Sequence record: NC_061449.1
DNA: 64,000 bases
Strand: one strand, 5' to 3'
The position numbers and the translations under genes are program-made. The notes below the pieces were generated by a model. That model did no database searches, was not told where the DNA came from, and saw only the letters and a list, made by a program, of their open reading frames with translations. This document shows, one piece after another, positions 19,991 to 61,993 of the stretch (within the stretch, counting starts at the first letter, position 1; each line of letters starts with the position of its first letter).

Positions 19991-20977
19991 TTAAAGTTTA
20001 CGCAGACCTTTCTTAATCGCAGCGTTAACTTGCGCGGCTGACGGGTCTTTCGTTGCAAACAGATCGATGACGTTCGTGATTGAGTCCAGTTCGCCGAGAT
20101 GAATCTGGACGTTCTGCACTTTCTTCAAATGATCAGCGATGAAGGTCATCAGCCAGCCTCTCTGTTTCATGACGACAGCGACTTCAAGGTCTTTATAGGT
20201 GAAAGAGAACTTGTTGCCGGCTGCGTGAAGCAGTTTAGCTGCACCAGGAATAGGCTCAACGGCGCGAATAAACTCAGGCGCATACTGGCGAGCCGTCTTC
20301 GTGCTGAGGACAGAGTATGCAGGGTCGAATGTCCGCACCTTGTCTTTGACCTTAGACTTAGATCCTGGTGTTCCGCCAGTTTGTTTCATGTCCGGGTTCT
20401 GCGTCCACGTGAGACCTTGATCCAGACAGTCTTGGCCAGTCAGAGCTTCCTGAATGATGACACGCTTGCTCTTCCCTGTCTCAACATTCTTCTCGGCTTC
20501 TGCCTCAGTCTTGAACGGACCTTTGATGATGATATCGTTCGCGTGTCGCGTGTGGTCGATAACGTACCACTTGTTGCGTTCGATCTTACCGTTGGCATCT
20601 ACGGTGTTAGCACGAACAGGACGCGTGGTTTTCGCAGGAGCATTCTGCTGGATAGCGACAGGTTTGATCTTGATTGCGCGAAGACCGTTGATGACTGCCA
20701 CCAGCGTCTTGGCTTTGTACAGGTTCTTCACAGCAGTAACGAGATTCTTACCGGCAGCTTTCTTCGCAAACGCAGTAGTAGCATCGGCATCGTTCAGCAG
20801 GTCAAGCACAGCAGACAGCTTCGCAGTGTCCAGCTCTTTGATTTTCACCAGCTCGTCAATCTTCTTGATCAGAACTTTAGCGTTCTTACCGAAAAGGATT
20901 TCGGCGTTGGCTACTTGCTTCTTGTTGGCAGCGGAGACTGATACCACCGTGCCTGATGGGAGAGTCATTTCGTACAT
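19991..20977 (-). CDS. Lys/Ala-rich putative head-internal protein
   Basis: Basic composition; N-terminal 'VVSVS|AA' motif shared with other putative internal proteins. Confidence 0.55.
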   Translation of the reverse strand: MYEMTLPSGTVVSVSAANKKQVANAEILFGKNAKVLIKKIDELVKIKELDTAKLSAVLDLLNDADATTAFAKKAAGKNLVTAVKNLYKAKTLVAVINGLRAIKIKPVAIQQNAPAKTTRPVRANTVDANGKIERNKWYVIDHTRHANDIIIKGPFKTEAEAEKNVETGKSKRVIIQEALTGQDCLDQGLTWTQNPDMKQTGGTPGSKSKVKDKVRTFDPAYSVLSTKTARQYAPEFIRAVEPIPGAAKLLHAAGNKFSFTYKDLEVAVVMKQRGWLMTFIADHLKKVQNVQIHLGELDSITNVIDLFATKDPSAAQVNAAIKKGLRKL

Positions 20978-20986
20978 TGCTGTTCC

Positions 20987-21532
20987 TTATCGTTTCTTGG
21001 TCCAGTTGTTTTGTTTCACTGGAGTAGGTGCAGTGTTCTCTTCCGTGATTTCTTCTGCGTCGTCTTCTTCCTCGACGTCATCTACTTCTGGCTCAGGCTG
21101 TGTTTCCTGAACTGGAGTAGTGTTGAGTACAGACGCAGCCAGTGGCGCTTGAGACACAGTATTTACAGTAGCGACAGGCTCTGCTTCTGCGACTTTACGC
21201 GCTTCTGCGACTTCACCTACAGCGTGTGAGTGAATCACGTCAACAGTCAGCAGCGCACCCTTCTCTTTCAGGATTGCATCTGCTTTCTCTTGATCCCACT
21301 GGTCCCAGATAATGTCCAGAGTCTTGTAGCCCCAGTTCATGCCCTTAGGCAGTTTACCACGACCGTTGAAAGGCAGACCATTCGAAGGGGTAGCTGGCTC
21401 GAACTCGTCCATCATCTCCCACTTACGTTTTGCCTCGATACACTTCGGTCCCCACACACCATCACACTGACCGTCATACAGACCGAGCATAGTCATGATG
21501 ACCTGGAGTTTCTGGTAGAATTTATTCAGCAT
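20987..21532 (-). CDS. Peptidoglycan-binding (PG_binding_1-like) domain protein with acidic tail
   Basis: 'LQVIMTMLGLYDGQCDGVWGPKCIEA...WE' matches the LQ..L..LG.....DG.FG..T..A...FQ pattern. Confidence 0.7.
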   Translation of the reverse strand: MLNKFYQKLQVIMTMLGLYDGQCDGVWGPKCIEAKRKWEMMDEFEPATPSNGLPFNGRGKLPKGMNWGYKTLDIIWDQWDQEKADAILKEKGALLTVDVIHSHAVGEVAEARKVAEAEPVATVNTVSQAPLAASVLNTTPVQETQPEPEVDDVEEEDDAEEITEENTAPTPVKQNNWTKKR

Positions 21533-21547
21533 AGTGAATCCTCTAAC

Positions 21548-21574: not shown

Positions 21575-24500
21575 TTAGACTGATTTGTTTTTCGACGCGG
21601 TCAGTTTCAACTTGTCGATACCCTGAATCGCTTTCTTGATGTTCGTGATGGTGTAGCCAGCTTTCACAATCTTGTTGATTCGAGCTTTCGCACCAGCAGC
21701 GTTTTTCACGAAGCCGATCCACATACCCGGTGACAGGTCGAACGTACCGAACTTACGAGTGTTAGGCACTTTCGTTCCGACGAAGCGTTTCATCTGCGGG
21801 TTAGTTTTCAGGTCAAACATAATACGCAGACGATCTTCCATCACCATTGGATATGCCTTGACGTGTTTCTTGTCAGTGGCAGACTTGTGACGCACAAGGA
21901 AGAACTGCTGCAACTGCGACTGCAACTTGATGGCCAGCTTGTAGTTGAAGCCCATTCGAGAATGCGTTTCGTCAAAGCTATCCTGGATGAACTCCAGACG
22001 CTTCTCAGACATGCGGTCGAATGACAGTTTCTTACCTTCGATGAAGTCCAGCATTGCAACGAAGTCATCGTAGTACGCACAGTCGTAATAGACGTAATCA
22101 CCAAACTCGGTGAAGTCGAAACCTTTCAGAGCTTTCGCATCAGGGTCAGTCGCGTCAGCATACAGAGCAACGAATCCGTTGTACACTGTAGGCGTCAGCT
22201 CCAGAGCCATGTCTGCGCCGCCTTTGTCGTCAACAGGCGCGATGGTTCCAGGCTTAGCACGACGAGTAGTGTTGTCCAACACTTTCAGTTCAGACGGCTT
22301 ACGGCGACGAACTTTCTTGGCAGCTTCTTCAACACCTTCGTTGATTGGCTTACCAGTCTTTTTGTTCTCCACACGCTTGGCAACGCGAGCAGCTTTACGC
22401 GCCTGCGCTTCCACCTTCTTCTCTGTCTCTTTCGTGTCAGCAGTCTGCGTTTCGTCGAGAACGGTGTCCTCAACTTCAACACGGTTCGCTTCGGCGGTAG
22501 CGCGTTTGCGATCTTTCTCGTTCGCCCACGGCTTACGCTGTTCGAAGAAACGTTTCAGATCGTTCTTATCTACCTTGGTGGCAATGTGAACTTTCGTTGC
22601 AGGAACAGCAACGGTCTCACCAGAGCCCGCCAGACGAACACGAACGGTACTGATAGGACTGTCACCGCGCAGCTTACCATCGACCATACGAACAGTCACA
22701 GATACGACAACGCCGTTACCGAACTCAGTCACGACAGGTGCACGATTCAGAGAATCTTTCAACCCTTCACCGCTAGTGAAGTTACGGTTACGCGCCCAGT
22801 CCAGAATACGCTCAGTGCCCCAGCCGTTACGATCAGGGATCTTCTGGTTAGCAACGAGCGGAGTCTGCTCCATAACACGGAAGTCATTCAGAGCTGGAGT
22901 TGACGGCAGCGCTTGCATTGCTGCAATCGTTGTCTTACGCATCTCTTGGAACTCTTGTGACTCGATTTCGTTCAGGTCACGCTTCGCGAGGAAGTATGGA
23001 GCAAAGTCTTCCATCGTGTTATTGTCGATCAACAGCTTCGCGCTCATTTTGATCGGGTCGAGCTTGTACTGGTCGAGTGCTTCGTAACGCTGGTTGCCTT
23101 TCTCGTCAAAGCGAGTCTTCTCCAGAGTCTTCCACATCAGACGTGCAACCTTACCAACTTCCAAGGTCTTGTTCGTCATAACCCAGTCGATGAACACAAC
23201 TTCACGAGCCATGTCGCCCGGCTTACCATTCTCGTCCAACTTCGCAGCAGCAACGTCAGGACGGAAGATACGCGCAGTAGACTGATCGTAAGTACCAGGT
23301 GACCACGGAGTATCGCAGCGGATGATACGGCTACCCATCTGCATGTTGTGGCCTTCGGAGATTGCCTGTTCGTTCGCAATCAGAATCTGAACGTTGTTGT
23401 CAGTTTTGAATGCGTCGAGGTTAGCATCTTTGTTCTGGCCGAGCTTACCAACTTCACCGTGATACACCACAGCAACTTTCTTATAGTTGGCTGGCAGTGC
23501 GTTGTAGATGGCGTTTGCGGCACGAACGTAACGAGTGAAGACAATCAGCTTGCCCTGCACTTCTGGCTTCCAGTAATCCGGATCGTCCGGAGGCGGAACC
23601 ATTGAAGGCGGCAGCGCTTGACGCTTGAACTCTTCGGACTGCTTACGTGCCAGATACTTCTGACCGTTGTAGACAGCAATGTCCAGTTCACGCGGCTCTA
23701 CGCCAGGCTTCCATTCGAAGATCTGCTGCTCACCGAGCATAGGATCACGTTCAGGCTGCACTTCGAAGTGCTTCTTGATACGGTCGATGATGGTCAGTAC
23801 CTTCGCAGAAACGAAGTTCGTAACACCTGCGGCTTCAAACGTCATACGAGCAACGTCATCACCCATAGGGTCAGTCAACATCATCTCCATACGCTGGAAG
23901 TACATGTTCAGGTCAGCGTTACCCGCCAGCAGTGCGCCGAGGTCATCGCCTTCTTCGATTTCATCTTCGTCAATGTCAGACGCAGAATCACCACCATCAC
24001 CGCCACCAGCTTCGTCGTCATCGTCGTCGCCACCGCCACTTTTCTTCTTGGCGTTCTTAGCAGCTTCATCCAACTTCTCCAGCACTTCTGCGTACATTGC
24101 GTTGTACACTTCTTGGTGCAGAGCAGAGTTAGGAACTGACGGGTCATCGATCTCAACCTGAATGAAGGTATCAATCGGGTTCGGCAGCATGAACGCCCAA
24201 TGCTTACGCTTAAACGAAATGAACGCTGTATGGTTTGCCATACGTGAATGCGCACGACGAATCATTTCGATATCGTCTTTCGCGCCGTCATACGCAACGT
24301 CCAGTGAGTCACCGAACATAGCAGGCGTCATCAGTGCAGCCTGACCAACGATATCACGCACACGGTCAGTTACCAGCGTACCGGTAGCGATACGAGCATA
24401 GCGAACAGACGGAGCAGTGAAGACTGCTTTGGTGTTGAAGTGAACCTGAGAACCAGATTGACCACCAGAGAAGTTTTTCACTTTATGCGATTCATCGAGC

Positions 24501-27427
24501 AGCACGTAGCTGAACTTGAAGCGGTTAACGAACTCTACAGCACCACGCACACGAACACGCACACCGCCAATATCAACGTTGAACGTACCAGTTTGCAGAT
24601 AGCTCAGGCCGACGATGAAGATTGTGTTACGAGGCGACTGAGAGATCACATCGTACATACGTTCTTCGCCCCACGTGTTAACAGTGTCAGCAGTAATAGG
24701 CACTGCGTTCCAGCCGTTAACAATTTTGTGGAGGTCGTCACACCAGTTCGCTACGAGGTTAGACGGACAGATGATCAGAGGACGAATTGTTTCTTCACCC
24801 AGATCATCCAGCTCTTTGATAAGAGCAGCAATGTCGGTCAGACCGATAATCGTTTTACCGCCACCAGGTGCGATAAAGATTGTTGCGTAGCGCGGGCGGC
24901 GACGCAGAGTTTTATGCGCTTCGACCTGATGCGGCAGTAACGCTGCACCGTCTTTCAGACCCGGAATACGGATATCGTCAATCGTGATACCGCTATCAGG
25001 TTTCAGGCGTTCGATCTCAGTCTCAGCCGCTTCGAAAATCTCAAGAGACTTAGGAATCACATCGCTGTACATCGTAGCGAACGGCAGGATGATCTGTTGC
25101 AGACGGCCTGAGCCAGGAGCTTCTTCGGACTCGATCAGAGAACTGAACAGCTTCTTACGGTCAGCACGTACAAGCGCCTGTGACATTTCACGATACACAG
25201 CACCACCGAAGTAGTTGTTGAGTCGTGCCATATCAGACAGCTTAGACTTCTCACCCATCACGAAGTAGTGAGTGTGTGACGGCAGAGATTCGGTTGCAGC
25301 CGTAATGCTCCCCATCTCAGACAGAGAGGTTGCAATCAGGTTGGAGCCACGCAGACCGGCAGCATCGTTCAGCACACGAATCATGATACGAATCATGGTC
25401 AGTGCAGGACGCTCGTTCGACATATCAGGCACAGAGAAGTCATTAGCAATGAGATTCTCGTACAGACCGCGATCCATCGGGCTTTCTTCAAGGGACGCGT
25501 TCTCTGCATCCATGCCGATTGCTTTACGTGCGTTCTCCACCAGCGTTTTCAGGTCAGGAACCTGTTTGCTCTTGAGCATGAACTCGTAGGTCTGACACGT
25601 CTGCGCGATGATGTTCAGCAGCTCAGGCAGGTTAGAACCTTCGGTGGAGTTGTACTTGATCGTGGATTCACTCACACTCTCAATCAACTTACCATTACCG
25701 GATTCAACCTTGGCAGCTTCTACCATCGTGTCGAATGACGGGCGATACAGTGCCATGCCACCAGACGCTTGGTTGTGATAGATGTTGCCAATCACATTCG
25801 ACACAGAACGGAAGTTCGGTGCTTCACCAGGCTCTGCGAAGTCGTAGCCTAAAGCATCAGCAACGTCAAGCGAGTTCGGTGCTTTCATGCCGACAGTACG
25901 CGTTTCGTTAACTGCCAGACCGCCACCATTAGAGGTGTTTACGATCAGCGAGAAGTCAGGGTCGATGCCGATACACACGTCGCTGAAACGAGACAGAGAC
26001 TTAGCTTTCGCCTGAATGTCACGGTCGAAGTCCAGATTGTTGTTCTGGATAGCGAACATGTTGGTACGCAGCGTGTCGTGTTCAGTAGACAGCGGAACGC
26101 CTTTCTCGAACAGGTCTTCAAGCACACCGTTCAATGAGGTTTCGTAGGTCTTCACCATCTCAACGTCAATGTCTTCACGACGCGGCAGAACAGCCATCGT
26201 ACCGTTCGGCATGATAGTCATACCATTCTCGTCGGCGACCACATCGTTCACGGCGTAACCGAACTTTTCACGCAGCTTCTTCAATTCAGGCAGAGAAGTC
26301 GCAGACGTTACATAGCGCGGGATACGTGCAGCACGAGTGATACCTGTACGAGTGGAACCAGCAACGCGGAAGTAATAGCTCGCCCACCCCTGGAACCAAC
26401 GATACAGACACATGGTCTGTGTGTCAGCACCCTGAGAGATGTACTCAACCATCTCTTTCTCGAAGTTAACGATCAGACCGCCTTCAACGCGAACGTCGGT
26501 GGCCAGTGCTACTTCGTTGAAATCGACAGGAGTATCGTGACTGATCTTCATCGCCTGAATCTTACGATCAATCATCTGTTTCCCAGGGACTGAGCGAATG
26601 CCGATAGTCATGAAGTCACCAAGACCATCAACCACAGACTTATCCAGATTGCGGAACAGGTCGATATCAATGTTGTGCATTGACGGGTGAATAGAACGCA
26701 GAGCAGCGTTATACACGGACCAGTCTTTATCCAGAGGGATGCGCACCATCTTGGTATCGAATGCGTTACTGTTAGTACGCTCAACGCCGAAGATATCCTT
26801 GTACAGAGTCTTCGCTACACGGATTGCTTGCTGTGCAATGTCGGCACTGTAGGTACGCAGGTTGGCACTTTCGAAGTTGGCATCGTTATCAACGCGAGGA
26901 CGGTCGCTACCCTGATTGTTCAGAACGTTGAAGTTACCGTTCGAGGCAAGTGGGCTAGTCGGGCACGGGGTACCAGACATGATGATATCTTTACCGCCAG
27001 GGAAGCGCGTACTGTTTTCGATGATAGCACCAGAAGAGGAAGACAGGTGCTCGGCAAGAGCAGTCTTAATCTCACGGCTGAGCTTATCACCGTTCAGCAT
27101 CATGTTAATCTTGAGCGTAGCCGCATCAATGTTGTTCTTAACACGCTTAACGAAATCGTCAGGTGCAACATCCAGCATGTCCTCGAACTCTGCACCGTTA
27201 ATAACGATGTAGTTGATCAAGTCGAACGCGGCATAGATGCGAGCTACTGTTGACGCGGTGAACACTGCGAGGGCTTCGTAGTTACGACGAGACTTCCCTG
27301 TAGCGTACATCTTCGACATTTTAGCGTCGAACTCGGGCGGCAACGGACGAATAGCAAGCGCCTGATTAAACGTATCGGCGATTTGCTGAGTCGCTGTTGC
27401 TGACACACTAATCATCTGATTCATCAT
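21575..27427 (-). CDS. Giant SNF2/SF2-family helicase/translocase, 1950 aa
   Basis: Q motif 'LLPHQ', Walker A 'APGGGKT', 'LIICPSNLV.NW', 'LLDESHKVKN', 'ATGTLV', 'EGHNMQ' and 'W.P...DQ..AR'; ~800-aa uncharacterised N-terminal region. Confidence 0.85.
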   Translation of the reverse strand: MMNQMISVSATATQQIADTFNQALAIRPLPPEFDAKMSKMYATGKSRRNYEALAVFTASTVARIYAAFDLINYIVINGAEFEDMLDVAPDDFVKRVKNNIDAATLKINMMLNGDKLSREIKTALAEHLSSSSGAIIENSTRFPGGKDIIMSGTPCPTSPLASNGNFNVLNNQGSDRPRVDNDANFESANLRTYSADIAQQAIRVAKTLYKDIFGVERTNSNAFDTKMVRIPLDKDWSVYNAALRSIHPSMHNIDIDLFRNLDKSVVDGLGDFMTIGIRSVPGKQMIDRKIQAMKISHDTPVDFNEVALATDVRVEGGLIVNFEKEMVEYISQGADTQTMCLYRWFQGWASYYFRVAGSTRTGITRAARIPRYVTSATSLPELKKLREKFGYAVNDVVADENGMTIMPNGTMAVLPRREDIDVEMVKTYETSLNGVLEDLFEKGVPLSTEHDTLRTNMFAIQNNNLDFDRDIQAKAKSLSRFSDVCIGIDPDFSLIVNTSNGGGLAVNETRTVGMKAPNSLDVADALGYDFAEPGEAPNFRSVSNVIGNIYHNQASGGMALYRPSFDTMVEAAKVESGNGKLIESVSESTIKYNSTEGSNLPELLNIIAQTCQTYEFMLKSKQVPDLKTLVENARKAIGMDAENASLEESPMDRGLYENLIANDFSVPDMSNERPALTMIRIMIRVLNDAAGLRGSNLIATSLSEMGSITAATESLPSHTHYFVMGEKSKLSDMARLNNYFGGAVYREMSQALVRADRKKLFSSLIESEEAPGSGRLQQIILPFATMYSDVIPKSLEIFEAAETEIERLKPDSGITIDDIRIPGLKDGAALLPHQVEAHKTLRRRPRYATIFIAPGGGKTIIGLTDIAALIKELDDLGEETIRPLIICPSNLVANWCDDLHKIVNGWNAVPITADTVNTWGEERMYDVISQSPRNTIFIVGLSYLQTGTFNVDIGGVRVRVRGAVEFVNRFKFSYVLLDESHKVKNFSGGQSGSQVHFNTKAVFTAPSVRYARIATGTLVTDRVRDIVGQAALMTPAMFGDSLDVAYDGAKDDIEMIRRAHSRMANHTAFISFKRKHWAFMLPNPIDTFIQVEIDDPSVPNSALHQEVYNAMYAEVLEKLDEAAKNAKKKSGGGDDDDDEAGGGDGGDSASDIDEDEIEEGDDLGALLAGNADLNMYFQRMEMMLTDPMGDDVARMTFEAAGVTNFVSAKVLTIIDRIKKHFEVQPERDPMLGEQQIFEWKPGVEPRELDIAVYNGQKYLARKQSEEFKRQALPPSMVPPPDDPDYWKPEVQGKLIVFTRYVRAANAIYNALPANYKKVAVVYHGEVGKLGQNKDANLDAFKTDNNVQILIANEQAISEGHNMQMGSRIIRCDTPWSPGTYDQSTARIFRPDVAAAKLDENGKPGDMAREVVFIDWVMTNKTLEVGKVARLMWKTLEKTRFDEKGNQRYEALDQYKLDPIKMSAKLLIDNNTMEDFAPYFLAKRDLNEIESQEFQEMRKTTIAAMQALPSTPALNDFRVMEQTPLVANQKIPDRNGWGTERILDWARNRNFTSGEGLKDSLNRAPVVTEFGNGVVVSVTVRMVDGKLRGDSPISTVRVRLAGSGETVAVPATKVHIATKVDKNDLKRFFEQRKPWANEKDRKRATAEANRVEVEDTVLDETQTADTKETEKKVEAQARKAARVAKRVENKKTGKPINEGVEEAAKKVRRRKPSELKVLDNTTRRAKPGTIAPVDDKGGADMALELTPTVYNGFVALYADATDPDAKALKGFDFTEFGDYVYYDCAYYDDFVAMLDFIEGKKLSFDRMSEKRLEFIQDSFDETHSRMGFNYKLAIKLQSQLQQFFLVRHKSATDKKHVKAYPMVMEDRLRIMFDLKTNPQMKRFVGTKVPNTRKFGTFDLSPGMWIGFVKNAAGAKARINKIVKAGYTITNIKKAIQGIDKLKLTASKNKSV

Positions 27428-32010: not shown

Positions 32011-32011
32011 A

Positions 32012-33118
32012 TCAGTCTGCCTTAGTGAGTCCCAGATACTCAATCAGATTGCGTAGCTGGTCGTTATACCCACCTTCAATAAGCGCTCGTGCCATTGCAA
32101 CGTGGTTAGAGTTCGCTGTACGCACTACCTTAGCCTGATACTCAGGAACGTTTTGCATGTTCTGGCTCAGGTTGTAGAAGTAGCTGCGCACGAAGTTGGT
32201 TCGCTCAACGTTGCTTGCTTCCATGTCGCTTGTGTCTTGCGTAGGAGTCAGCAGCAGATAAAGCGCTGCAAGCAGTTCAGGACTTTGATCAATGACAGGC
32301 GATGCCAGAGAAGCAGCAATCTTCATCAGGCCCTTCGCAACAAAATCAACCACAGTCTTTTCGACGAACTCCGTACCGGCTTTACCTACGTTAGGCAGAT
32401 AGAGGCCAGGCAAGATGAAGATACAGAAGTAAAGAGGAAAGTCTTTACGCATCACGTCGGGGATAAGCATCTCCGAGTAGTCTTTCCAGATGTTGATATT
32501 GAAGTGCCATTCATCGTAAGGCACAGTACGCATCAAGTTCGACACAGACAGGTCTTTCACAAGGTTAGCCTGCGATGCAAGATCGCGAGCACTCTGCGAA
32601 GGCGCAAGGTTAGAACTCGACACAAGCTGAACGTAGTTGCGTGTCACAGCACCTACAGTGTTGTACACAACGTTCAACATCTCAACACCGTTACCGTTCA
32701 GGCCAAAGATGACAGAACGAGGAAGACCGATAGTGATGTACTCGTTATTGTTCTCGACACCCCACAGTCTCCAGTAGCGACCACGACCCAGCTGAGTCAT
32801 AGGTGGCGGGAGAATACGATTAGCGCGAGGTTTCAGGCAGAACGTGAACGCAATGCCACTGTCAATCATGATCACTGAATCATCAGGACGATTCGAATAA
32901 CCCATCGACATGTTGTTGTCAGTGCTGAACACGTTTACCAGAGTGAAGTTCAGAGACTTTGTGAAAGGCATCTGCGCTTCAATCAAATAGCCGAGAACTT
33001 GACGGACGATAGTATCAAGCACATAAGGAGAAGCGTTACGCATTTGATTCGGACGATACTGCCCGCTATACGTATTCTCCTTGAATGTGCGATCTACCTT
33101 GAAGTGCGTCAACGCCAT
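32012..33118 (-). CDS. Hypothetical protein (probably virion)
   Basis: Coupled to 33118..34407 (TAATG). Confidence 0.6.
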   Translation of the reverse strand: MALTHFKVDRTFKENTYSGQYRPNQMRNASPYVLDTIVRQVLGYLIEAQMPFTKSLNFTLVNVFSTDNNMSMGYSNRPDDSVIMIDSGIAFTFCLKPRANRILPPPMTQLGRGRYWRLWGVENNNEYITIGLPRSVIFGLNGNGVEMLNVVYNTVGAVTRNYVQLVSSSNLAPSQSARDLASQANLVKDLSVSNLMRTVPYDEWHFNINIWKDYSEMLIPDVMRKDFPLYFCIFILPGLYLPNVGKAGTEFVEKTVVDFVAKGLMKIAASLASPVIDQSPELLAALYLLLTPTQDTSDMEASNVERTNFVRSYFYNLSQNMQNVPEYQAKVVRTANSNHVAMARALIEGGYNDQLRNLIEYLGLTKAD

Positions 33119-34407
33119 TACTTAACAGACTGTTTCAGCAGGCGTTTCTGTTGCGGGTTCAGGCCCATGACGTCTGCGATCTCGTCGATCTTACGCAGAG
33201 TCAGAACGCCTTTCGCAGTGCCACCGCTACCTGTCAGTGAGACTTTAACGAACTCACGACCGTTACGGCCAGTTACCATCTGATGCACGATGCTGTTCTT
33301 ACCGCCGCGACCTGCGCGAAGTGCGGTAGAGGCCATACCCAAGATTTCGGTAACAGCTTCTTTCTTCTCGGTAGGACTGAGGCCCGGAACCAGACGCACA
33401 TACAGGCTATCGTTCTGCACACGCACGTTGTCGAAGATTTCTTTCTTACGACCGCGAATGGTGTGTTGCTGATTGCCCAGCATCGTCGTGTCACGCAGGT
33501 TCTGCGTAGAACGGTTGATAGGCTTACGCTCGCTGTAGTTCAAGAATCCGTCGAGAGCCATCAGGTGGTTGATGGTACGCTTCATCTCTGGAGCAGTAGC
33601 AATCTGACGACCCATAGGGAATGAACCAGGGACTTTCTCGTCAACGAGTGACGTCAGGAAGTTTTCGCTGATACCGCTTGCGACCGCGATCGTGGTAGAC
33701 AGCACCAGAGCATAGTTCGGGTAGTGCATACCGTCTGAGTTCACGAAGTTATCAATGAACACATAGGTCTGGAAGCAGATAGGGTCGGTGCCAGACGCGA
33801 TGAAAGTACGAGTACGAATCTTCGAATAGTCTTCTTTATTCAGAATCTTCGACAGGTAGTTAGCGATAGTTGCAGCCAGCTTGGTGTGTTCTTTAGGAGC
33901 GCCGTTCTTAACGTCGATGCTCATAAGTTTAACCAGTTTGGTCTGCTGATCTTTCGCCTGTGCAATGACGTTAAGCAGGGACTTCGCTGCGGTGTTCTGA
34001 TCTTTGAACGCGCTGAAAGTTTTGCTGCTGAGAATCTGGTACGCAACAGACAGTTCGCCAATTGCCTGACTGAGTTGACTCACCTGATTGTTGTACTGCG
34101 CTTTGTTGCGTACATCGGTAATGTCAATCTTAGACAGGTCGATAACCTGATTCAAGTCAATCGCTTTTGTCTGCTTGCCTTTGATGGAGCCTTCGATATC
34201 GGACAGCTCAATAGCTTTAGCGCTGACAGACAGAAGGCGCTTAGGGATAGCGACGCTTTGTGCAGTCGCTACTACGCGGTCGAGCACGTTACGGAACTCT
34301 TTCGCTGTACGAGCACCGCGCAGGGCAGCCATGTTCCCAGAGCTATAGTCAACAGATGCGCTGATACTGCTAACTTCATTGTTTTTGGCAGTCTTAGCCA
34401 TGATCAT
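33118..34407 (-). CDS. Putative virion/head protein
   Basis: Strong codon bias; 'EVSSIS|AS' near the N-terminus; CTAATTTTT upstream. Confidence 0.55.
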   Translation of the reverse strand: MIMAKTAKNNEVSSISASVDYSSGNMAALRGARTAKEFRNVLDRVVATAQSVAIPKRLLSVSAKAIELSDIEGSIKGKQTKAIDLNQVIDLSKIDITDVRNKAQYNNQVSQLSQAIGELSVAYQILSSKTFSAFKDQNTAAKSLLNVIAQAKDQQTKLVKLMSIDVKNGAPKEHTKLAATIANYLSKILNKEDYSKIRTRTFIASGTDPICFQTYVFIDNFVNSDGMHYPNYALVLSTTIAVASGISENFLTSLVDEKVPGSFPMGRQIATAPEMKRTINHLMALDGFLNYSERKPINRSTQNLRDTTMLGNQQHTIRGRKKEIFDNVRVQNDSLYVRLVPGLSPTEKKEAVTEILGMASTALRAGRGGKNSIVHQMVTGRNGREFVKVSLTGSGGTAKGVLTLRKIDEIADVMGLNPQQKRLLKQSVK

Positions 34408-36526: not shown

Positions 36527-38410
36527 TTACTTCTTAGCAGCAAGTCGTGCCCTACGCGCTTTAGCTTCGTCGCGCAGCTCGGCAACCTCTTCAAGAGCCT
36601 GAGCCATTGCGATCTCCAGTGCGCGATCACAAATAGCGTCAATGATTTGTTGAGGGTTCTCTTGTGTGTCGAGAAGCAGATACATAGGGTTCCCTAACTC
36701 AACTGCTTCAGGGTATAGTTCCTCACGCGCTTCCGCAATACACAACTCACCATCAATGTGGTACATGAGTCTAGGTATCTCGGTCTTCTTGAGCTTGTAC
36801 TTCTTATCCTCAAACATGGGGCGAAGTTTCGTGCGGAAGTCTTCGTGTGCGTCGATTGCAATGTATTTGTAACCGGCAAACACTTTCTTCGCAGCATTGA
36901 AATAGCGCTTGTCGATTATGGCCTTGTATCGTTCCATGCTCGCTTGATTAGCAGCAGGGCAAGCAGGAGCCATATTTGCCAACGAGCCGATAGCAGGTGC
37001 CAGAACGTATTCAGCATACAGACTAGAACTGTCCATATACTCCTCATCAACGTAACGGACCTGTACGCCACCAGTGTTAACGCGTGACGCATGGAACCAG
37101 AACATGCTTTCAGGATTCACTGAGTATTTAGCGAATGACCAAATCTGAGACAGCGCAGCAGGATAGGACCAACGCGTCAGATCATCCTTCCTCACACCGA
37201 ACAGATCAACTTCATCAAGGTTAGCGTCGAGGAAGCTCTTACGCTGTGCCTGTGGCAATCGGTCAATGAACATGTGCATTGCTCGCGTTTTACCTGATAG
37301 GTGTTGCCAAATTCTAGGCACGACAACATCATCAATACCGAACTTGTCAAACACAGTATCGAGGAACTGCCCGAACTCGTCATAACGCTTATCCCCAATA
37401 AGGGCAGCACTACAACGCACATAGAACTTAGGCTGTCCCCATTTCTCTCGCGCGAACATTGTAGCAATCTGAGGGTGACGGTCCAGAGCGTCAACAACAA
37501 TTTCCTCGTTGTTTGCAGCACGAGGCGCAGCAATAATGCCGCGAACAAACCCAGCAAGATCGCCTCGCATCAGCGGACTTTCAAGATCGTAGTTGAACTC
37601 AGTGCTACGCTGATCCGCATACAGCTTGCTACCCAGCTCATACATTCCCTTGCGCTCTGTGGCAGCGATGAAAGGATTAATGTGTTCGTCCAGCCAATCT
37701 TGCAGTACGTGAACGAAGGGCATCTTAGAATCTGGGTAGGCATACTCTACCAAATATAGCGCATTCACTTTCTCAGAGCCTACGAAACGTTCAGACGCTT
37801 TTGCTTTTGTTTGTTGGAAGTAAGGCTTAGCGAGGCAACGACCGATAGGCTTATTGATGTTTCTGTCCGAGGGATCAATCAGGTACGCGATCAACGTGCC
37901 ACCAGCAATGTCTTGTTTGACAAATCTCTTGTTCGAGCCTGTCTTCAAGTTCATGCAGCTCACCCACCCACGGTCTGTGGACATGCCTGCAATATCGTAC
38001 GGGTGCATTGAGATGCAGATAAGCTGACGGTTACGCGTCGCATTGACCATAGACTTACGGTTTGGGTCGGAGTCAAACATCTTCTTGAGTTCAGGATTCT
38101 TTGACAACACACGACCAATCTTAACGATACGCCCGTGCGTGTCTTTGCCTGTACCCGCAAGATAGTCAACGAGGACAATATCCTTTTCCATCAGAGCGTC
38201 AACGATTTGAATCGGAGGCTTGATATTCTGAGCGATATTCTTGATCACGTCGTCTGTCTTCGCGTCAATGTAGATGCGCATGGCCTTGTAGCCTTTCTTG
38301 CCGCTAATCTTTTCAAACAGATTCAGCAGTGTAATATTAGGCTTCCATCCTTTTCTGTACTTGCGGTACAGAGATGGAGGGAGAGCAGATAAACTGACTT
38401 GAATTTCCAT
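36527..38410 (-). CDS. Putative head-internal protein with MEIQVSLSA leader, 627 aa
   Basis: True start is probably the ATG at 38410 (MEIQVSLS; GAG RBS; CTAATTTTT ~28 nt upstream). Confidence 0.65.
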   Translation of the reverse strand: MEIQVSLSALPPSLYRKYRKGWKPNITLLNLFEKISGKKGYKAMRIYIDAKTDDVIKNIAQNIKPPIQIVDALMEKDIVLVDYLAGTGKDTHGRIVKIGRVLSKNPELKKMFDSDPNRKSMVNATRNRQLICISMHPYDIAGMSTDRGWVSCMNLKTGSNKRFVKQDIAGGTLIAYLIDPSDRNINKPIGRCLAKPYFQQTKAKASERFVGSEKVNALYLVEYAYPDSKMPFVHVLQDWLDEHINPFIAATERKGMYELGSKLYADQRSTEFNYDLESPLMRGDLAGFVRGIIAAPRAANNEEIVVDALDRHPQIATMFAREKWGQPKFYVRCSAALIGDKRYDEFGQFLDTVFDKFGIDDVVVPRIWQHLSGKTRAMHMFIDRLPQAQRKSFLDANLDEVDLFGVRKDDLTRWSYPAALSQIWSFAKYSVNPESMFWFHASRVNTGGVQVRYVDEEYMDSSSLYAEYVLAPAIGSLANMAPACPAANQASMERYKAIIDKRYFNAAKKVFAGYKYIAIDAHEDFRTKLRPMFEDKKYKLKKTEIPRLMYHIDGELCIAEAREELYPEAVELGNPMYLLLDTQENPQQIIDAICDRALEIAMAQALEEVAELRDEAKARRARLAAKK

Positions 38411-38437: not shown

Positions 38438-38446
38438 AAAAATTAG
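38438..38446 (-). promoter_or_regulatory. CTAATTTTT motif (class 2, late promoter candidate)
   Basis: Recurs ~23-31 nt upstream of several virion/lysis gene starts. Confidence 0.55.
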
Positions 38447-43819: not shown

Positions 43820-44395
43820 TCAAAGTTTAGGCTTGGCGCCTTTCTTGCGATCAGCTTCTGCGTCACGCTTCTTATCTATTACAGATGTAGCGCCAAACTT
43901 AGGCTTCAACGCAGCAGTCTGGGTGCCGTGAGTCTTAACGCGAAAGCGGTCGGTCTTGACGTTTTTGATCTTGCCTTCGGTATACTTCCAATCACCGACA
44001 GTGATATGGCTTACCAGAATAGGCATTTCAAGGCCAGACAGGCCTGCTTTCTTCAAACTGGCAGACGCATCACGCAATAACTGTTTTGCCTCAGCACCAG
44101 TAGATTTGGCAGTAACCGTCAGCGTTTTAATCTGACCTTTAAGCGTTGTCTTAGCTGCTTCGGTTTTTGCGCTACGCAGTTTCAATTTCGCAGCGTCAAG
44201 CATCTTACTCGCTTTCGCACACTCAAGACCTAGCTTTTTAGCCTTAGTCGTGTCCGAAAGAACTTTGGTTACAGTAGCTTTATGCTTCGAGTCGATAGCC
44301 AGGTTATAACTACCACCACCGACGTAGACAGCGTAGCCAGTTGTCTTCTTCGCGGCCGATGCAGATAACACCAGACCTATTGTAATCTTAGCCAT
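43820..44395 (-). CDS. Lys/Ala-rich putative head-internal protein, paralog of 42838..43794
   Basis: 'LSAS|AAKK' leader; 'A...L..A....K..GL.GL..P......I..G' shared. Confidence 0.6.
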   Translation of the reverse strand: MAKITIGLVLSASAAKKTTGYAVYVGGGSYNLAIDSKHKATVTKVLSDTTKAKKLGLECAKASKMLDAAKLKLRSAKTEAAKTTLKGQIKTLTVTAKSTGAEAKQLLRDASASLKKAGLSGLEMPILVSHITVGDWKYTEGKIKNVKTDRFRVKTHGTQTAALKPKFGATSVIDKKRDAEADRKKGAKPKL

Positions 44396-44404: not shown

Positions 44405-45010
44405 TCATACCAGCGCACGGCCGGGAAGATCGAAGTTTTTACCAGCCGAGTAATCACCCAGCGCTTGGTACAGGGAGTTGCGTAGCATCTGCTCAATGAT
44501 ATCTGAGTTGTGTGCCGAAGCGTCTTTGAAAGAGACCTCGATCGACTCAGTTCTCGGATTCACGACAGCGTAACGCAGCGGGCAGATCTGCTGCGCTTCA
44601 CACCATGCGTCTACTTTGATTTGCAGATCAGGTGTAATTGGTATGCGGAAGTCTGCGAGTTGGAACACAACGCTCTGGATAGGAGGAGGCGACGAATGCG
44701 ACATGAACTTACCATTCACATTCAAATGCTCCATAGCGTTTGCCGCTTCATAGATCGTTTGATAACCGTCACCTACTGTGGTGAGGCCACTGAGCTTGAA
44801 GCTATGCGTTGTCAAGCCTTTGCGGATCAGCTTGGCGATATTGACTTCATAATCACCAGAGTCATCACGCATGAAAGTGACGAACGCGTAGAAGGCGAAA
44901 CCATCTTCTTCGCGTAAAAGTTTGTGATCTAATACACGAAAGCCCACGACACTTTGCAGTGCCTGGGCTGTGATTTGCGTCGCCTTAGATAGGGAGACGT
45001 AGATTTCCAT
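44405..45010 (-). CDS. Hypothetical protein with MEIYVSLSK leader
   Basis: Shared leader; coupled to the upstream ORF (TAATG). Confidence 0.6.
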   Translation of the reverse strand: MEIYVSLSKATQITAQALQSVVGFRVLDHKLLREEDGFAFYAFVTFMRDDSGDYEVNIAKLIRKGLTTHSFKLSGLTTVGDGYQTIYEAANAMEHLNVNGKFMSHSSPPPIQSVVFQLADFRIPITPDLQIKVDAWCEAQQICPLRYAVVNPRTESIEVSFKDASAHNSDIIEQMLRNSLYQALGDYSAGKNFDLPGRALV

Positions 45011-45345
45011 TAACGCAGACGGGCGAGAGCTTTCTTAGCAGCAGCCAGAGTAGGTTGGATATCGCCTTCGTCGTCGAACTCACCTTCGAAACGAATGTCG
45101 AGACCAGTCACGTTGAAACCTTCGTCTTCATCTTTGGTGATGATGCCGAAACGAGCGGTGTCGCCGGTAGCGCTGATGAAACGCAGATCCAGAATGTCGT
45201 TCGGACCTTCTAAGTCAGACGGCATACCGTCGTCAATGATCTCGAACAGCGCTTTCTTGTCCATGCCCTTGAAGAAGGCGGACAGAGCAGCGGCAGCAGA
45301 TACAGACTTAACAGCGTCATTCAGATTCAGTTTGATAAGAGACAT
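45010..45345 (-). CDS. Acidic small protein with 'KSVS|AAAA' leader
   Basis: GGAG RBS; strong codon bias. Confidence 0.6.
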   Translation of the reverse strand: MSLIKLNLNDAVKSVSAAAALSAFFKGMDKKALFEIIDDGMPSDLEGPNDILDLRFISATGDTARFGIITKDEDEGFNVTGLDIRFEGEFDDEGDIQPTLAAAKKALARLR

Positions 45346-45920: not shown

Positions 45921-45956
45921 AGATATAGCCCTCTTTTAGACAGACTAAAATTAGCG

Positions 45957-52317: not shown

Positions 52318-52767
52318 TTAATAGCGTCTTGGTTTCTTAGGCTTTTTAGGCCTTGTGGATTTAGGACGTTTGATACGCTGTAGCGCTTTACGTGCCTCGG
52401 CAATTTGAGTAGATAGTGTTGCGCGTTGCTTCTTCGTCGCGTCAGTATCTTGGTCAGTGCCTTTCAATTTCTCAAGGCGATTCCACTCTTTCACCAAGCG
52501 ATCCACGACAGCAGCACGAGAGACACGTTGCTGGTTAGTGCGCACAATATCCTGTTGTGTCTTGACAGATCGCTGACTATCAAGCACTTTGGTTCGTGCA
52601 GACTCAATACCTTTCGTGTCACCCTCAGACTGTTTCTCGTTGAGCGCTTTACGGGCAGCGTTATTCCTGCGCTGTGCTCCTTTCAGATCATCACGCGAGT
52701 TTTCCAGACTCACTTTGGTATCTTCGAGTGGGCTTGAGCGCACACTCAAACTAACTTTGATTTCCAT
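52318..52767 (-). CDS. Basic coiled-coil protein with MEIKVSLSV leader
   Basis: GAGG RBS; shared leader; Lys/Arg/Pro tail. Confidence 0.6.
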   Translation of the reverse strand: MEIKVSLSVRSSPLEDTKVSLENSRDDLKGAQRRNNAARKALNEKQSEGDTKGIESARTKVLDSQRSVKTQQDIVRTNQQRVSRAAVVDRLVKEWNRLEKLKGTDQDTDATKKQRATLSTQIAEARKALQRIKRPKSTRPKKPKKPRRY

Positions 52768-52898: not shown

Positions 52899-53435
52899 TC
52901 ATGCTGATTGAAGATCGACAACTTCATCGTCTTCGATATCAGCGGCAGACCACGAACGAAGCACGGACGCATTGCCGCGATTGCCCGTCAACATCATTTT
53001 GATTGACGGTCGAGCATCGCGCTCTGCATAATGGTCGATAAGAGCTTTGTCATTAGCGAACCACAAAATGGAGTGACCACCTTTAGGGCAGATCAAGAAT
53101 TGAGGTGGACGCTGAGGAACGTTCAACGTCATGTAGAAATCACCAGCGCCAGTAGGACCAACCATAGGCATTGGCTTCATGACCTGCATAAAATCAGTGG
53201 CGTCTGTAAGACGTTTATCGCCCAGCAACCAGATAGCACCCTCTTCACCTTCACGCACAGCAGACAACGTGCCTTTGCGTGTAGTGATTGAACCGAATAC
53301 GTCTTGGTCAAATCGTGCAAGACCAAAGATAAGCGATGCGAGTTTCTTTAAGTCAGGCGTGGTACATGGACTTTCGATCTTCGCCATGCCCTCAGACCCA
53401 ACTGTAATCTTCGAGAGTGATACAAAGATTTCCAT
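52899..53435 (-). CDS. Hypothetical protein with MEIFVSLSK leader
   Basis: Shared leader. Confidence 0.6.
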   Translation of the reverse strand: MEIFVSLSKITVGSEGMAKIESPCTTPDLKKLASLIFGLARFDQDVFGSITTRKGTLSAVREGEEGAIWLLGDKRLTDATDFMQVMKPMPMVGPTGAGDFYMTLNVPQRPPQFLICPKGGHSILWFANDKALIDHYAERDARPSIKMMLTGNRGNASVLRSWSAADIEDDEVVDLQSA

Positions 53436-53502
53436 TATTGTCTTCCAGAGCTGTATGATTGATTGTAGTTAAAATTACTAACGAGTCAGACATTTCTGAA
53501 AT

Positions 53503-59340: not shown

Positions 59341-60968
59341 TCGTCACCCATAAAATCAAGGGTATCAGAGAATTTCTTAATGATGAATTTCGCCTTCGCC
59401 GATTTGACGTCGCCCTTAGACTTCATTAGAGCACCGTCGTGTTCAAGCGAGTAAACGATTTCAACATTACCACTTAGAATCGCTTCAAATAAATGACTCG
59501 ACTCAATGCCAGATATGCAATGACTCATGGTTCGTCGTCGTACCTTACGGGACGAAATACATTCATCGTGCTCAAGCACATACTTGGCTCCGGTATCGCA
59601 GGTCAGCAACATACCATCAGAGGTGTAGCGGAATCGCTTGGAATAAATATCACATAGCTGCTGGAGCGCAGTAATAAAATGCTTGCAGTCTATGTTCCAC
59701 GATTCCACAAAGTCATATACCTCACTCAGATTTTTAAAGTGAGGCCTCAATGCCATGACAGCACTCGCTTTAGGACTTTTGACTAATCTGTCCGCGCTGA
59801 ACAACGTACCATAAAAACAAATCTTCACCAGCTTCTTCGATAGGCGGGTGTTATTTGGGTTAGCTTTCTGGAGCTTGTCCACAATGTCATTTACAGAATG
59901 CACATCGTCAAGGAACGGACATACAATGCCGTTGTCGGCGAACTCCTTACGGATGATATTGAGCTGGCTGCTCTCCATGTCCCAGTTATCACCGATAACA
60001 CTACACGCCTGTTTAAGAACAGCGGGGAAAGATTGGAATCCACCGCCTTGCTCAAACAGACGACCACCGACCTTAGCTATTGTGTATGCTGGGTAGTAGC
60101 GAATAATCAACGGCTCTTCGGACACAATTTGAATTGGTCCTGAGAGAATAGCCTGAAGACAACTCATTACCTGATGATATTGCTTGAGAGCTTTGCGTGT
60201 ACCTCTAAAACTCTTAACAGTCAGGTAATCAAGAATCGGGTCAATAGCAATTTCGTTTGGCCCTATCTTCTTCAACACCGCTGTATAAAGTTTACGTGCG
60301 GCCCTGTCACGATTAGATTTCAATCCGTACTTAGCTTCGCCTCCCGATAGGTCATGCTTGCGCGGCTTAAACGGTTTGTTAGCGGCAGCGCTTATCATCT
60401 CCAGAATCGTTTGTCCAAACCGCTCTTGAACCGCTTTGAGCGGACTATAGAGTCGAGTGAGTTCGAGAATCTCACGATTAGACTTCGGGCGATTGGGATA
60501 CATCGCATCCAAACACCGACGCTTAATGCGAAACTCACGACAGCGACCAGGTGACGTCGGGGTTTTCTTCTTGTACCGCTTATAATCCATAACGTTAGCG
60601 ATAAGCCATTCGAGGGCGCGACTGAAATGTTTCTCAGTCCGTTCCCACCGAGGCCCTACAGGACCTCTTAGCGTGTTTTCACAACCGAATACCATCGGAA
60701 GCTCTTTGACACCAAGTTTTCTGCTGAACGGTACCCAGACAGCACCAAATTTCTCAAATTTCTTTCTTTTTGTTGGATATATCGACGATTGCAACACATG
60801 CCAGAAGAATAGATTGATCTGACGTCGATATTCTGCCTCATGCTTTTCCGGTCCATCGTACGGGCATTTCTCAACGACGTTATCGCGTACCCACACAAGA
60901 GGTTCTAACTCCTGGTAGGTAGGGTTGCGCGTCAAGACGGCTTTGCCTTTTTTCATAAAAGAAGACAT
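59337..60968 (-). CDS. Second, divergent family A (T7-like) nucleotidyl-polymerase-fold protein lacking exonuclease
   Basis: In order: 'GGRLF....FQSFP', motif A 'NWDMESSQLNII', motif B 'KKLVKICFYGTLFS', 'SHCISGIES' and motif C 'LEHDGAL'. Probable start MSSF at 60968 (AGGAG RBS). Confidence 0.65.
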   Translation of the reverse strand: MSSFMKKGKAVLTRNPTYQELEPLVWVRDNVVEKCPYDGPEKHEAEYRRQINLFFWHVLQSSIYPTKRKKFEKFGAVWVPFSRKLGVKELPMVFGCENTLRGPVGPRWERTEKHFSRALEWLIANVMDYKRYKKKTPTSPGRCREFRIKRRCLDAMYPNRPKSNREILELTRLYSPLKAVQERFGQTILEMISAAANKPFKPRKHDLSGGEAKYGLKSNRDRAARKLYTAVLKKIGPNEIAIDPILDYLTVKSFRGTRKALKQYHQVMSCLQAILSGPIQIVSEEPLIIRYYPAYTIAKVGGRLFEQGGGFQSFPAVLKQACSVIGDNWDMESSQLNIIRKEFADNGIVCPFLDDVHSVNDIVDKLQKANPNNTRLSKKLVKICFYGTLFSADRLVKSPKASAVMALRPHFKNLSEVYDFVESWNIDCKHFITALQQLCDIYSKRFRYTSDGMLLTCDTGAKYVLEHDECISSRKVRRRTMSHCISGIESSHLFEAILSGNVEIVYSLEHDGALMKSKGDVKSAKAKFIIKKFSDTLDFMGDD

Positions 60969-61360
60969 TCGAATCTCCTGAATCACTTCTTTCGTTCATT
61001 TTCTTCTTGTTGTTTACAGAAACCTCTTGCGCTACAAGGCGATACAAGGCAGGTAGAAGAACAAGCAACGCTGGGCGATCGAGCGGCGCGCTCAAGGCAC
61101 GGGATATACACATACAGCTAGGGGCTTTAGGCGCACTCCGTTTTTGAGATAGCAAAAGGATAGAACCATGCTTATATGCGCTATAACCCATGCTCTACAT
61201 GCCCAAACATACGCGTAGGAGCGATCTCAATTTTCAAAAAGATCTCCCCGAAACCATGTAAATTTTTTTGAATTTGGGCGAGATTTCTGTCCATTTTTTA
61301 ACCAGTAGACGAAAAACAGAGGAAAACCCGAATAAAATCAAGGACTTTCCTCCAGTTTCG

Positions 61361-61993
61361 TTACTTTTTCTGCGAAACGCGCTTCCCTAACTTCACTCCA
61401 ATCTGCGTCAGAATGCGCTTAACGGTCTCTCCGTCATGCTCCGCCATAGCGTTTGCGAGCCTTTCGCCCTGTTCGCGCGATAGCTCAGGCATAATCATTT
61501 TAAGCATCTGCGAGCGCATTTTAGCAGACTTTGAGCGCCCTTTCGACGTTGAAACACCAGCCTCGTCGAGTTCCTCTGCTACGCGGCTCATGGTGCGCTG
61601 CACACGACGATCAGCGAAGATATCAGCGAATAAACTGCCGAACAACTGCTTAAAGTTGCCCTGTGCGTTAGGGAAACCTACCGTTTGTGTGCAGTGCGTA
61701 GATTCAACCTGATTCGTTGTGCGTCCACCAGCACGGAAGTTCTCGTCAGGGCGCGACGCTTTACCCTCTGCGCCCGGCTTAGTGTTGCCGTTACGCAGAT
61801 CAGCATCGCCTTCGACAGCTTTATCTGGGTCAAACATGTCGTCAGCTTTCGCGCTTTGATTTGCATCAAACGGAATCTTGCCTGTCAGCTTATTCGGGTC
61901 TGGCCAGCTATCTGGGATATCTGATGCAGGCTGAGGTTTGTTTGTCATATCACCGTTTGATGCGCCGTTCAGACTGATTTTAACGAGTGCCAT
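61361..61993 (-). CDS. Putative head/scaffold-associated protein
   Basis: AGGAG RBS; 'MALVKISLN' leader-like N-terminus; disordered middle, helical C-terminus. Confidence 0.5.
   Translation of the reverse strand: MALVKISLNGASNGDMTNKPQPASDIPDSWPDPNKLTGKIPFDANQSAKADDMFDPDKAVEGDADLRNGNTKPGAEGKASRPDENFRAGGRTTNQVESTHCTQTVGFPNAQGNFKQLFGSLFADIFADRRVQRTMSRVAEELDEAGVSTSKGRSKSAKMRSQMLKMIMPELSREQGERLANAMAEHDGETVKRILTQIGVKLGKRVSQKK

Follow-up and report, generated by a model that had tools for sequence, protein, structure and literature searches.

The DNA analyzed here (the window, 64,000 nucleotides) corresponds to positions 124001-188000 of record NC_061449.1, Erwinia phage pEa_SNUABM_17, with a match identity of 100%. 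The phage belongs to the genus Alexandravirus, has a jumbo genome of 263,916 bp, and is a member of the 'Lupandier' group of jumbo myoviruses, which includes its relatives Lu11, PaBG, the Dickeya JA phages, AD1, Y3, Yoloswag, and Alexandra (PMC7412058). The subject of the analysis is a short N-terminal peptide, MEIxVSLS (the type-1 tag), with which several genes of this phage begin. An original prediction, made from the window sequence, had claimed that five otherwise unrelated open reading frames start with this peptide, that a looser leader ending in S-x-S/A (the slash marks the proposed cut) starts others, and that together they are a candidate capsid-targeting and protease-cleavage system. 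The genes taken up from that prediction all lie on the minus strand, and the majority are annotated as hypothetical. The type-1 genes of the genome are listed below, in window coordinates unless record positions are given.

gp185: 36527..38410, minus strand, 627 amino acids, type-1 start MEIQVSLSA (leader codons 38387-38410)
gp192: 42325..42834, minus strand, GTG start, 169 amino acids, type-1 start MEIFVSLSA, then IYYRGL
gp195: 44405..45010, minus strand, 201 amino acids, type-1 start MEIYVSLSK
gp207: 52318..52767, minus strand, 149 amino acids, type-1 start MEIKVSLSV, isoelectric point (pI) 10.8
gp208: 52899..53435, minus strand, 178 amino acids, type-1 start MEIFVSLSK
gp231: record 194502-194978 (beyond the window), plus strand, type-1 start MEIYVSLSQ, 34% Asp plus Glu
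gp240: record 199241-199558 (beyond the window), plus strand, type-1 start MEILVSLSH

The five starts predicted in the window were all found where they had been placed, and the genome-wide pattern search extended the set. Six-frame translation of the whole genome gave seven matches to EI.VSL, every one of them at an annotated start, and two of these (gp231 and gp240) encode extremely acidic or highly charged low-complexity proteins outside the window. The start of gp118, a NUDIX protein, is a near-variant of the tag (MMINVSLSA). The description of the five window proteins as otherwise unrelated was borne out by BLASTP, in which the similarity among them was confined to residues 1-11. When all 54,285 pairs of 330 proteins were compared at positions 2-8, at least 6 of 7 identities were found in 21 pairs, precisely those among the seven tagged proteins, and the same test on a control stretch (positions 32-38) gave 0 pairs.

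The codons used for the tag varied from copy to copy, with AGT, TCC, TCA, TCT, and TCG for Ser and TTA, CTG, CTA, TTG, and CTC for Leu, and the DNA upstream of the tagged genes was unconserved between copies. The divergence of the codons and the unrelated upstream DNA indicate that selection acts on the peptide and not on the DNA or RNA, and an explanation at the DNA level was rejected on the Ser and Leu codon divergence. A translation-initiation or other regulatory RNA element at the start codon could be proposed from ATG GAA ATY, which is common to the tag copies at the DNA level; however, the Ser codons switch between AGY and TCN, Leu uses five codons, the upstream regions are unrelated, and the variants of the tag in other genomes (see below) differ coherently in amino-acid class, so that conservation at the nucleic-acid level has almost no likelihood.

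No informative family was found for the tagged window proteins in Pfam, PHROGs, NCBIfam, or PADLOC; their PHROGs matches were solely to families of unknown function, and weak matches were obtained for gp240 (Pfam, sub-threshold) and gp207 (PADLOC). The gp207 protein appeared coiled-coil- or disorder-like. The AlphaFold2 model of gp192 was poor, with a predicted local distance difference test (pLDDT) score of 59, which is unsuited to a fold search, and residues 1-10 were unstructured in it (pLDDT 25). The tag has the general form M, polar or charged, hydrophobic, any residue, hydrophobic, S/A, hydrophobic, S/A, often with Ala next; among 125 non-redundant leaders, 34% had Ala at position 9 and 62% had a small residue there (A, S, T, or G). 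In form it resembles a single amphipathic beta strand with a putative small-x-small site at its end. A Sec, Tat, or lipoprotein signal peptide, for which a basic n-region, a hydrophobic h-region of 7-15 residues, and a c-region following the minus-3/minus-1 rule would be expected, was considered and rejected, as only the small-x-small end of such a signal is present in eight residues with alternating polar positions; the tag is too short and insufficiently hydrophobic to be a secretion signal.

The tag was retained in orthologues from other genera despite an overall identity of 27-50%. Phages JA29, Yoloswag, and Y3 keep MxIxVSLS, and across orthologues position 2 was E, Q, or K, position 4 was free, position 5 was V or I, and positions 6-8 were S, L or I, and S. 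The gp195 orthologues, for example, start with MQIYVSLS, MKIFVSLA, and MEILVSIS. More distant genomes use other variants, here called dialects: at least 13 Lu11 genes, three of them gp185 paralogues, have a MKIQLAVA-like start, and at least 14 genes of HRDY3 start with MEMMLALA or MELxLALA. When IMG/VR was scanned with a DNA pattern for MKIQLAVA, Lu11 alone matched. Only the gp185 family is common to the sets of tagged genes of pEa_SNUABM_17 and of Lu11 and HRDY3, and therefore the tag is a portable label on lineage-specific genes.

The same behavior was seen in uncultivated phages. A search of IMG/VR with gp185 alone returned close relatives only, whereas an alignment of the gp185 domain as the query returned 80 loci, of which 67 distant ones (L041-L107) were used for the counts of dialects and clustering, with the close relatives (L028-L040) set aside. 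In ten of the 67 loci, which span about 190 kb, a further 36 genes bore the tag, 3-9 per 20-kb locus, and the other 57 had about 1 tag match per 100 kb, equal to the opposite-strand control. Tagged genes thus cluster at loci whose gp185 homologue or its neighbors bear the tag. One dialect was used per locus on these contigs, namely MKIQLSLS, MKIxISIS, MKLxISLS, or MEILVSLS. The tag changes coherently by genome, with whole gene sets switching dialect together.

Homologues of the N-terminal domain of gp185 (residues 1-200) numbered more than 2000 representatives in public data, although no curated family library includes it; the domain carries the invariant motif S-x-HPYD ... G-x-S-x-x-RGW-x-SC. 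Among the best 150 homologues, about half are tag-like at the start and the rest begin with an untagged MKLxDLLxEALKPSxYR, as is the case for the Atu_ph07 homologue, which is of the untagged kind. The orthologue leaders are MEIVVSLS in Yoloswag, MEIEVSLS in JA29, MRIQLAVA in Lu11, and MELQLALA in HRDY3. The size of this family and the alignment of LSALPPS with LEALKPS of the untagged homologues suggest that the tag may have arisen in the gp185 family. It could accordingly be argued that the tag is a mere remnant, spread when recombination placed the 5' end of a gp185-family gene in front of other genes, and that it has no common function. This is very improbable, since the codons have fully diverged with the peptide retained, the tag is better conserved than the remainder of the proteins across genera, and whole gene sets change dialect together. 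The tag is modular: it is absent from the Atu_ph07 homologue of gp185, present on disordered acidic and basic proteins, and unstructured in the gp192 model.

A longer leader of a second type (type 2) and looser S-x-S starts were found on the following window genes.

gp193: 42838..43794, minus strand, 318 amino acids, basic; type-2 leader MALIRINIADSLVSES followed by AAKK (orthologues MALIKINIEQAVVSESAAKK and MSLIRLTIPGQELVSESAKAP)
gp194: 43820..44395, minus strand, 191 amino acids, basic; type-2-like leader MAKITIGLVLSAS followed by AAKK
gp196: 45010..45345, minus strand, 111 amino acids; type-2 leader MSLIKLNLNDAVKSVS followed by AAAA
gp219: 61361..61993, minus strand, 210 amino acids; type-2-like start MALVKISLNGASNG, with KISLNGA; the weakest member
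gp174: 21575..27427, minus strand, SNF2 helicase of 1950 amino acids; N-terminal MMNQMISVS/ATAT
gp172: 19991..20977, minus strand, 328 amino acids; N-terminal ...VVSVS/AANKK
gp182: 33118..34401, minus strand, 427 amino acids, in the head-tail connector neighborhood; N-terminal ...VSSIS/ASVDY

These N-termini agreed with those originally described for the looser set, namely LVSES/AA (gp193), LSAS/AA (gp194), KSVS/AA (gp196), ISVS/AT (gp174), VSVS/AA (gp172), SSIS/AS (gp182), and KISLNGA (gp219); for gp182 the N-terminus held and the start, given as 34407, is 34401 in the RefSeq annotation. The longer leader is exemplified by gp193, which begins with MALIRINIADSLVSESAAKK, and gp196, which begins with MSLIKLNLNDAVKSVSAAAA, and related leaders are carried by gp194, gp219, and gp249 (beyond the window). 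In type-2 orthologues the pattern is M[AS]LI[KR][IL]N[LI], 3-4 free residues, and hydrophobic-x-S-x-S-A. The motif [VIL]S.SA was observed 10 times within the first 25 residues, compared with 2.0 expected, and 20 times in the whole proteome. The S-x-S of gp172, gp174, and gp182 is retained in Y3, Yoloswag, and JA29, where gp172 keeps S-x-S-A. These similarities suggest that the type-2 leader may be a relative of the type-1 tag, both being putative address-type leaders.

The prohead protease, whose identification had been called for with the original prediction, is put forward here as gp141 (record 108684-109463, beyond the window), for which the protein search returned 70 homologues. No match to gp141 was found in Pfam or among PDB sequences, and the protein was assigned to PHROG 18299, named head maturation protease. 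The fold model was built on the Alexandra protein, which is 92% identical, and reached a pLDDT of 86. The top and sole plausible PDB match of this model in Foldseek was T4 gp21 (5JBL), and it was weak, with an E-value of 0.076, a probability of 0.75, and a template modeling (TM) score of 0.49. All 44 aligned sequences of the family keep His124 and Ser181, and the family has a conserved CxxC...CxH zinc-ribbon-like insert without a counterpart in T4 gp21. A gp141-family protease was present on every large tag-bearing contig, no large contig with untagged gp185 homologues occurred among the protease loci, and the loci flanking the protease often bore several tagged genes, with a maximum of six. 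Adjoining gp141 is gp140 (record 107551-108684, beyond the window; 7551-8684 in locus L005), a protein with the HELAH zincin motif, which is absent from the protease-adjacent position in Lu11 and HRDY3. A PDB sequence search gave no match for gp140; from its motif it could be a second processing enzyme.

Sites similar to the end of the tag were found in the protease and in the capsid protein. The N-terminus of the protease has a hydrophobic-x-S-x-S-F motif conserved in more than 30 diverse homologues. In the capsid protein, the first candidate site was LS[ES]S/TGE, of which TGE in the N-arm is invariant; LSxS/TGE was downgraded as a cleavage site, because some lineages have K, R, N, T, or G just before TGE. 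The second candidate site, near residues 66-70, reads VHS[TVHQ]S[AGS] in genomes of the S dialect and VATASS, IAVAN, or IATAA in genomes of the A dialect. In a crude score uncorrected for phylogeny, the dialect covaried with this second site (Spearman 0.54, p = 0.008, n = 23). A cut there, at about residue 70, would take off about 19% of the protein. In PaBG, maturation makes the capsid protein about 20% lighter, and several virion proteins are proteolytically processed (PMC7412058). The mass loss in PaBG fits the candidate cut near residue 70.

The small-x-small end with Ala at position 9 resembles a cleavage site, and the motif recurs at the protease's own N-terminus; both would also be expected if the tag were a removable propeptide or degron, cut by a phage protease or by a host protease of the minus-3/minus-1 type, that acts as a timing switch with no targeting role. 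A peptide of eight residues is, however, too short to mask enzymes whose folds are unrelated, activation would be needless for disordered acidic or basic proteins, and the strongly conserved hydrophobic pattern before the site suggests binding beyond mere cutting, which makes a simple propeptide or degron improbable.

Distinct promoter-like motifs were seen in the intergenic regions, and the following late-type ones were located in the window.

GCTAATTTTT: 38438..38447, minus strand, 37 nt upstream of gp185; late-type promoter-like
GCTAATTTTA: 45946..45955, minus strand, upstream of the endolysin gene gp197; late-type promoter-like
AGTAATTTTA: 53470..53479, minus strand, 44 nt upstream of gp208; late-type promoter-like

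The motif GCTAATTT occurs 30-55 nt 5' of structural genes, namely the pre-portal gene, the sheath paralogues, the baseplate, PAAR, and the head module, and also 5' of gp185, gp208, gp249, and the endolysin gene. The endolysin gene gp197 heads a tightly packed run, gp197-gp191, which contains gp196, gp195, gp194, gp193, and gp192, and a late-type motif stands in front of four of the five type-1 window genes. A different motif, CTGTAAATA, was found 5' of the genes for ligase, DNA polymerase, clamp loader, sigma factor, and single-stranded DNA-binding protein (SSB), and it matches a Lu11 motif that GenBank annotates as a putative middle/late promoter. The two promoter-like motifs separate the structural and lysis genes (GCTAATTT) from the replication genes (CTGTAAATA). 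Within the window, motifs of the CTGTAAATA type lie upstream of gp171 (~19940), gp184 (~36470), and gp209 (~54880). A third promoter class, sigma70-like (TATAAT), was seen solely in the 211-245 kb region of the record. A terminator hairpin, GGGTGGCTTCGGCTGCCC with a T-run, occurs as nearly identical copies in many intergenic gaps genome-wide, for example upstream of gp207 (window ~52790-52815), gp171, gp184, and gp156.

In the PaBG virion, 14 Coomassie-visible gel bands have been identified by matrix-assisted laser desorption/ionization (MALDI) (PMC7412058). One of them, band 1, contained gp202, a helicase of 221 kDa that is orthologous to gp174 and 31% identical to it over 1730 residues; in band 9 the protein was gp83, whose start, MLIKINLLEAVAAK, is a type-2 leader. 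No virion proteome was found in records or literature for Alexandravirus, Y3, Lu11, or the JA phages; the GenBank records of Lu11 and Y3 hold no structural or mass-spectrometry notes, the literature on Dickeya JA/AD1 and Aeromonas phages contained no proteomics, a literature search for structural-protein and N-terminal data on phiRSL1 gave nothing usable, and no entry in the Atu_ph07 virion table could be assigned to the gp185 homologue of that phage.

The cargo originally proposed comprised an ADP-ribosyltransferase (ART)-like enzyme, an SNF2 motor, and basic proteins. The SNF2 motor was substantiated by the SNF2 and Helicase_C domains of gp174 in Pfam, and the basic proteins by gp207, gp193, and gp194, whose pI is above 10. 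The ART-like enzyme fared unevenly. For gp192 the evidence was weak: no Pfam match, including ART-PolyVal (PF18760), was obtained up to E = 1, and hhalign against ART-PolyVal-like leader proteins gave a weak probability of 47% over 49 columns. After the tag, gp192 has IYYRGL where the ART-PolyVal-like proteins have VYYHGT; by this resemblance gp192 is possibly related to ART-PolyVal. Clear ART-PolyVal members with the tag were found in related genomes, L045 and JA29 (E = 3.6e-24). Tagged in relatives as well are an SprT-like peptidase, a NUDIX protein, an NAD-dependent DNA ligase, and a topoisomerase IB; leader-bearing topoisomerase IB or NAD-dependent ligase genes lie in Lu11 (L008:13481-15166), HRDY3 (L025:13328-15016), and the IMG/VR loci L160, L059, and L149. 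If the leader means packaging, those phages would have DNA-repair enzymes in the virion. The ART-PolyVal, SprT-like, NUDIX, ligase, and topoisomerase IB domains were reportedly proposed as packaged by Iyer et al. in 2017.

Several points weigh against a role in packaging and processing. No MEIxVSLS protein was detected in virions, the sole available proteome of the clade being that of PaBG with its 14 bands. The covariation of the A and S dialects with the capsid site may stem from a few independent events. The characterized gp21-like proteases (T4, phiKZ, and SPN3US) cleave after Glu, and in the capsid protein the true cut could fall at the invariant TGE of the N-arm, so that a Glu-type cut may apply there. 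Cleavage of the tag itself, and the position of the putative cut, are inferred. The motif GCTAATTT is taken to mark late transcription from its association with structural genes, which is its one basis; gp231 and gp240 have no clear late-type motif, and the plus-strand block to which they belong also contains genes for a sigma factor, SSB, and a recombinase. The tagged ligase and topoisomerase could equally be replication enzymes sorted elsewhere.

The tagged DNA ligase, topoisomerase IB, and NUDIX proteins of relatives, the setting of gp231 and gp240, and the fact that no type-1 protein was detected in virions favor docking of the tag, perhaps uncleaved, to a non-capsid partner, be it a chaperone, an assembly devoted to replication or repair, or a membrane or another place in the cell. 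Against this stand the co-occurrence of the tag with the capsid and protease lineage, the small-x-small motif in the N-terminal regions of the protease and capsid protein, the late-type promoter motif, and the presence in the PaBG virion of the gp174 orthologue and type-2 leader relatives. Docking outside the capsid is thus considered unlikely, although it is the foremost of the alternatives.

In summary, the tag is real, is under selection at the peptide level, is modular, occurs in genome-specific dialects, and is linked to the protease and capsid lineage. On balance, and by a small degree, it is probable that it serves as a leader for capsid targeting and processing, similar in action to the capsid-targeting sequence (CTS) of T4 but with another code. 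The portable leader, the dialects, the co-occurrence with the protease, the motif in the protease and capsid N-termini, the late-type promoter motif, and the PaBG virion proteins lend this part of the original prediction indirect support; it is by inference that the tag is connected with packaging and cleavage, with a cleaving enzyme, and with a binding partner.

If so, late in infection the tag would dock unrelated accessory proteins to a common partner in the prohead during its assembly, which could be the scaffold or core or else the inside of the HK97-fold shell. The gp21-like gp141 would then remove the tag after the second small residue, and would trim its own chain and that of the major capsid protein at sites of a similar kind. 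The cargo would remain in the head and enter the cell along with the DNA. It may include low-complexity proteins of basic or acidic composition together with the giant SNF2 helicase and members of the gp185 family, to which relatives would add ART-PolyVal, SprT-like, NUDIX, DNA ligase, and topoisomerase IB proteins.

A broader proposal, which falls somewhat short of an even chance and is offered tentatively, is that in a mostly uncultivated jumbo clade this 8-residue beta-strand tag serves as a programmable packaging code, whose dialects co-evolve with the capsid and protease; that a protease of the gp21 fold has shifted from Glu to a small-x-small specificity similar to that of signal peptidase or assemblin; and that unbundled polyvalent-type enzymes (ART, SprT-like, NUDIX, ligase, topoisomerase IB, and SNF2) are delivered with the DNA. 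If the tag directs encapsidation, the injected or internal proteins could be listed by sequence for the whole jumbo clade, including many metagenomic genomes whose genes almost all lack a known function, and the sorting of dozens of non-structural proteins into the heads of giant phages would become testable. It would also represent a new specificity in the gp21/assemblin protease family and a clear natural case of a targeting code co-evolving with its reader, and would connect the T4 internal proteins with the bioinformatically predicted polyvalent proteins.

Two further features were noted among the neighboring genes. The small protein gp189 (window 40875-41240, minus strand) matched a Tlde1/YkuD domain of the L,D-transpeptidase-like kind (PF10908, E = 1.5e-17). 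Such a domain is known in effectors of type VI secretion, and the relatives of gp189 are annotated as DUF2778. An MQY[LI]... start is common to gp190 (41301-42119), gp198 (45957-46802), gp199 (46831-47715), and gp186 (38485-39375); for gp190, gp198, and gp199 at least, the shared start appears to reflect weak paralogy and not a portable tag.

The closest known system is the CTS of T4, a short N-terminal peptide on the internal proteins IPI-III that is removed by the prohead protease gp21; the packaged ADP-ribosyltransferase Alt is processed by gp21 as well. In both systems a portable N-terminal peptide of about 10 residues stands on unrelated, fast-evolving accessory proteins, a head protease is present (here with a weak match to the gp21 fold), basic proteins are among the cargo (here proposed), and T4 Alt is paralleled by the tagged ART-type proteins. 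The two differ in that there is no sequence similarity between them, and in that the tag is predicted to be a beta strand, whereas the T4 peptide is an amphipathic helix. The T4-type (L/I)-x-E cleavage signature is absent from the tag, which ends in S/A-hydrophobic-S/A and has its sole Glu at position 2, where Lu11 has Lys; the proposed cut would follow Ser or Ala in small-x-small, whereas T4 cuts after Glu. The tag is also found on more genes per genome (7 to at least 14), with dialects and a second, longer leader, and is known here from sequence alone.

The propeptides of phiKZ, 201phi2-1, and SPN3US are cut at S/A/G-x-E by the gp175/gp245 proteases. These too are jumbo phages, and a gp21-like protease processes many of their head and ejection proteins at a short motif. 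The phiKZ propeptides, however, are long and mutually dissimilar and share just the Glu-ended motif, whereas here the whole octapeptide is common and has no terminal Glu; no S/A/G-x-E motif was found within or directly after the type-1 tag. The polyvalent proteins of phages and conjugative elements (Pfam family ART-PolyVal, PF18760) contain ART-PolyVal, SprT-like/zincin, SNF2, and nucleic-acid enzyme domains that have likewise been proposed to travel with the DNA, but as one giant fused polypeptide, whereas here the domains occur on small individual proteins that each bear a tag.

Two further systems offer parallels. Encapsulin cargo-loading peptides of bacterial nanocompartments, whose shell has the HK97 fold, are also short linear peptides with alternating hydrophobic and small residues, and they send unrelated cargo inside the shell, as is proposed for the tag; they are usually C-terminal, they are uncleaved and non-viral, and they were compared with the tag by description only. 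The leaders of the capsid and scaffold proteins of staphylococcal phage 80alpha mimic the extension of ribosomal protein L27 and are cut by the host protease Prp, a cysteine protease of Firmicutes. Like the tag, they are short, N-terminal, and beta-strand-like; they stand on unrelated head proteins and are cut before Ala, where the proposed cut of the tag would often fall as well, and the type-2 leader (LIKLNL) superficially resembles the L27 leader; however, Prp is a host enzyme of Firmicutes, and the hosts here are Gammaproteobacteria. The leader strings were not found in the searchable literature. The concept of a short shared targeting leader combined with a prohead protease is already known. 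New are the class of sequence and the specificity proposed for it, the dialects, the existence of a second type of leader, and the wide occurrence among uncultivated jumbo phages.

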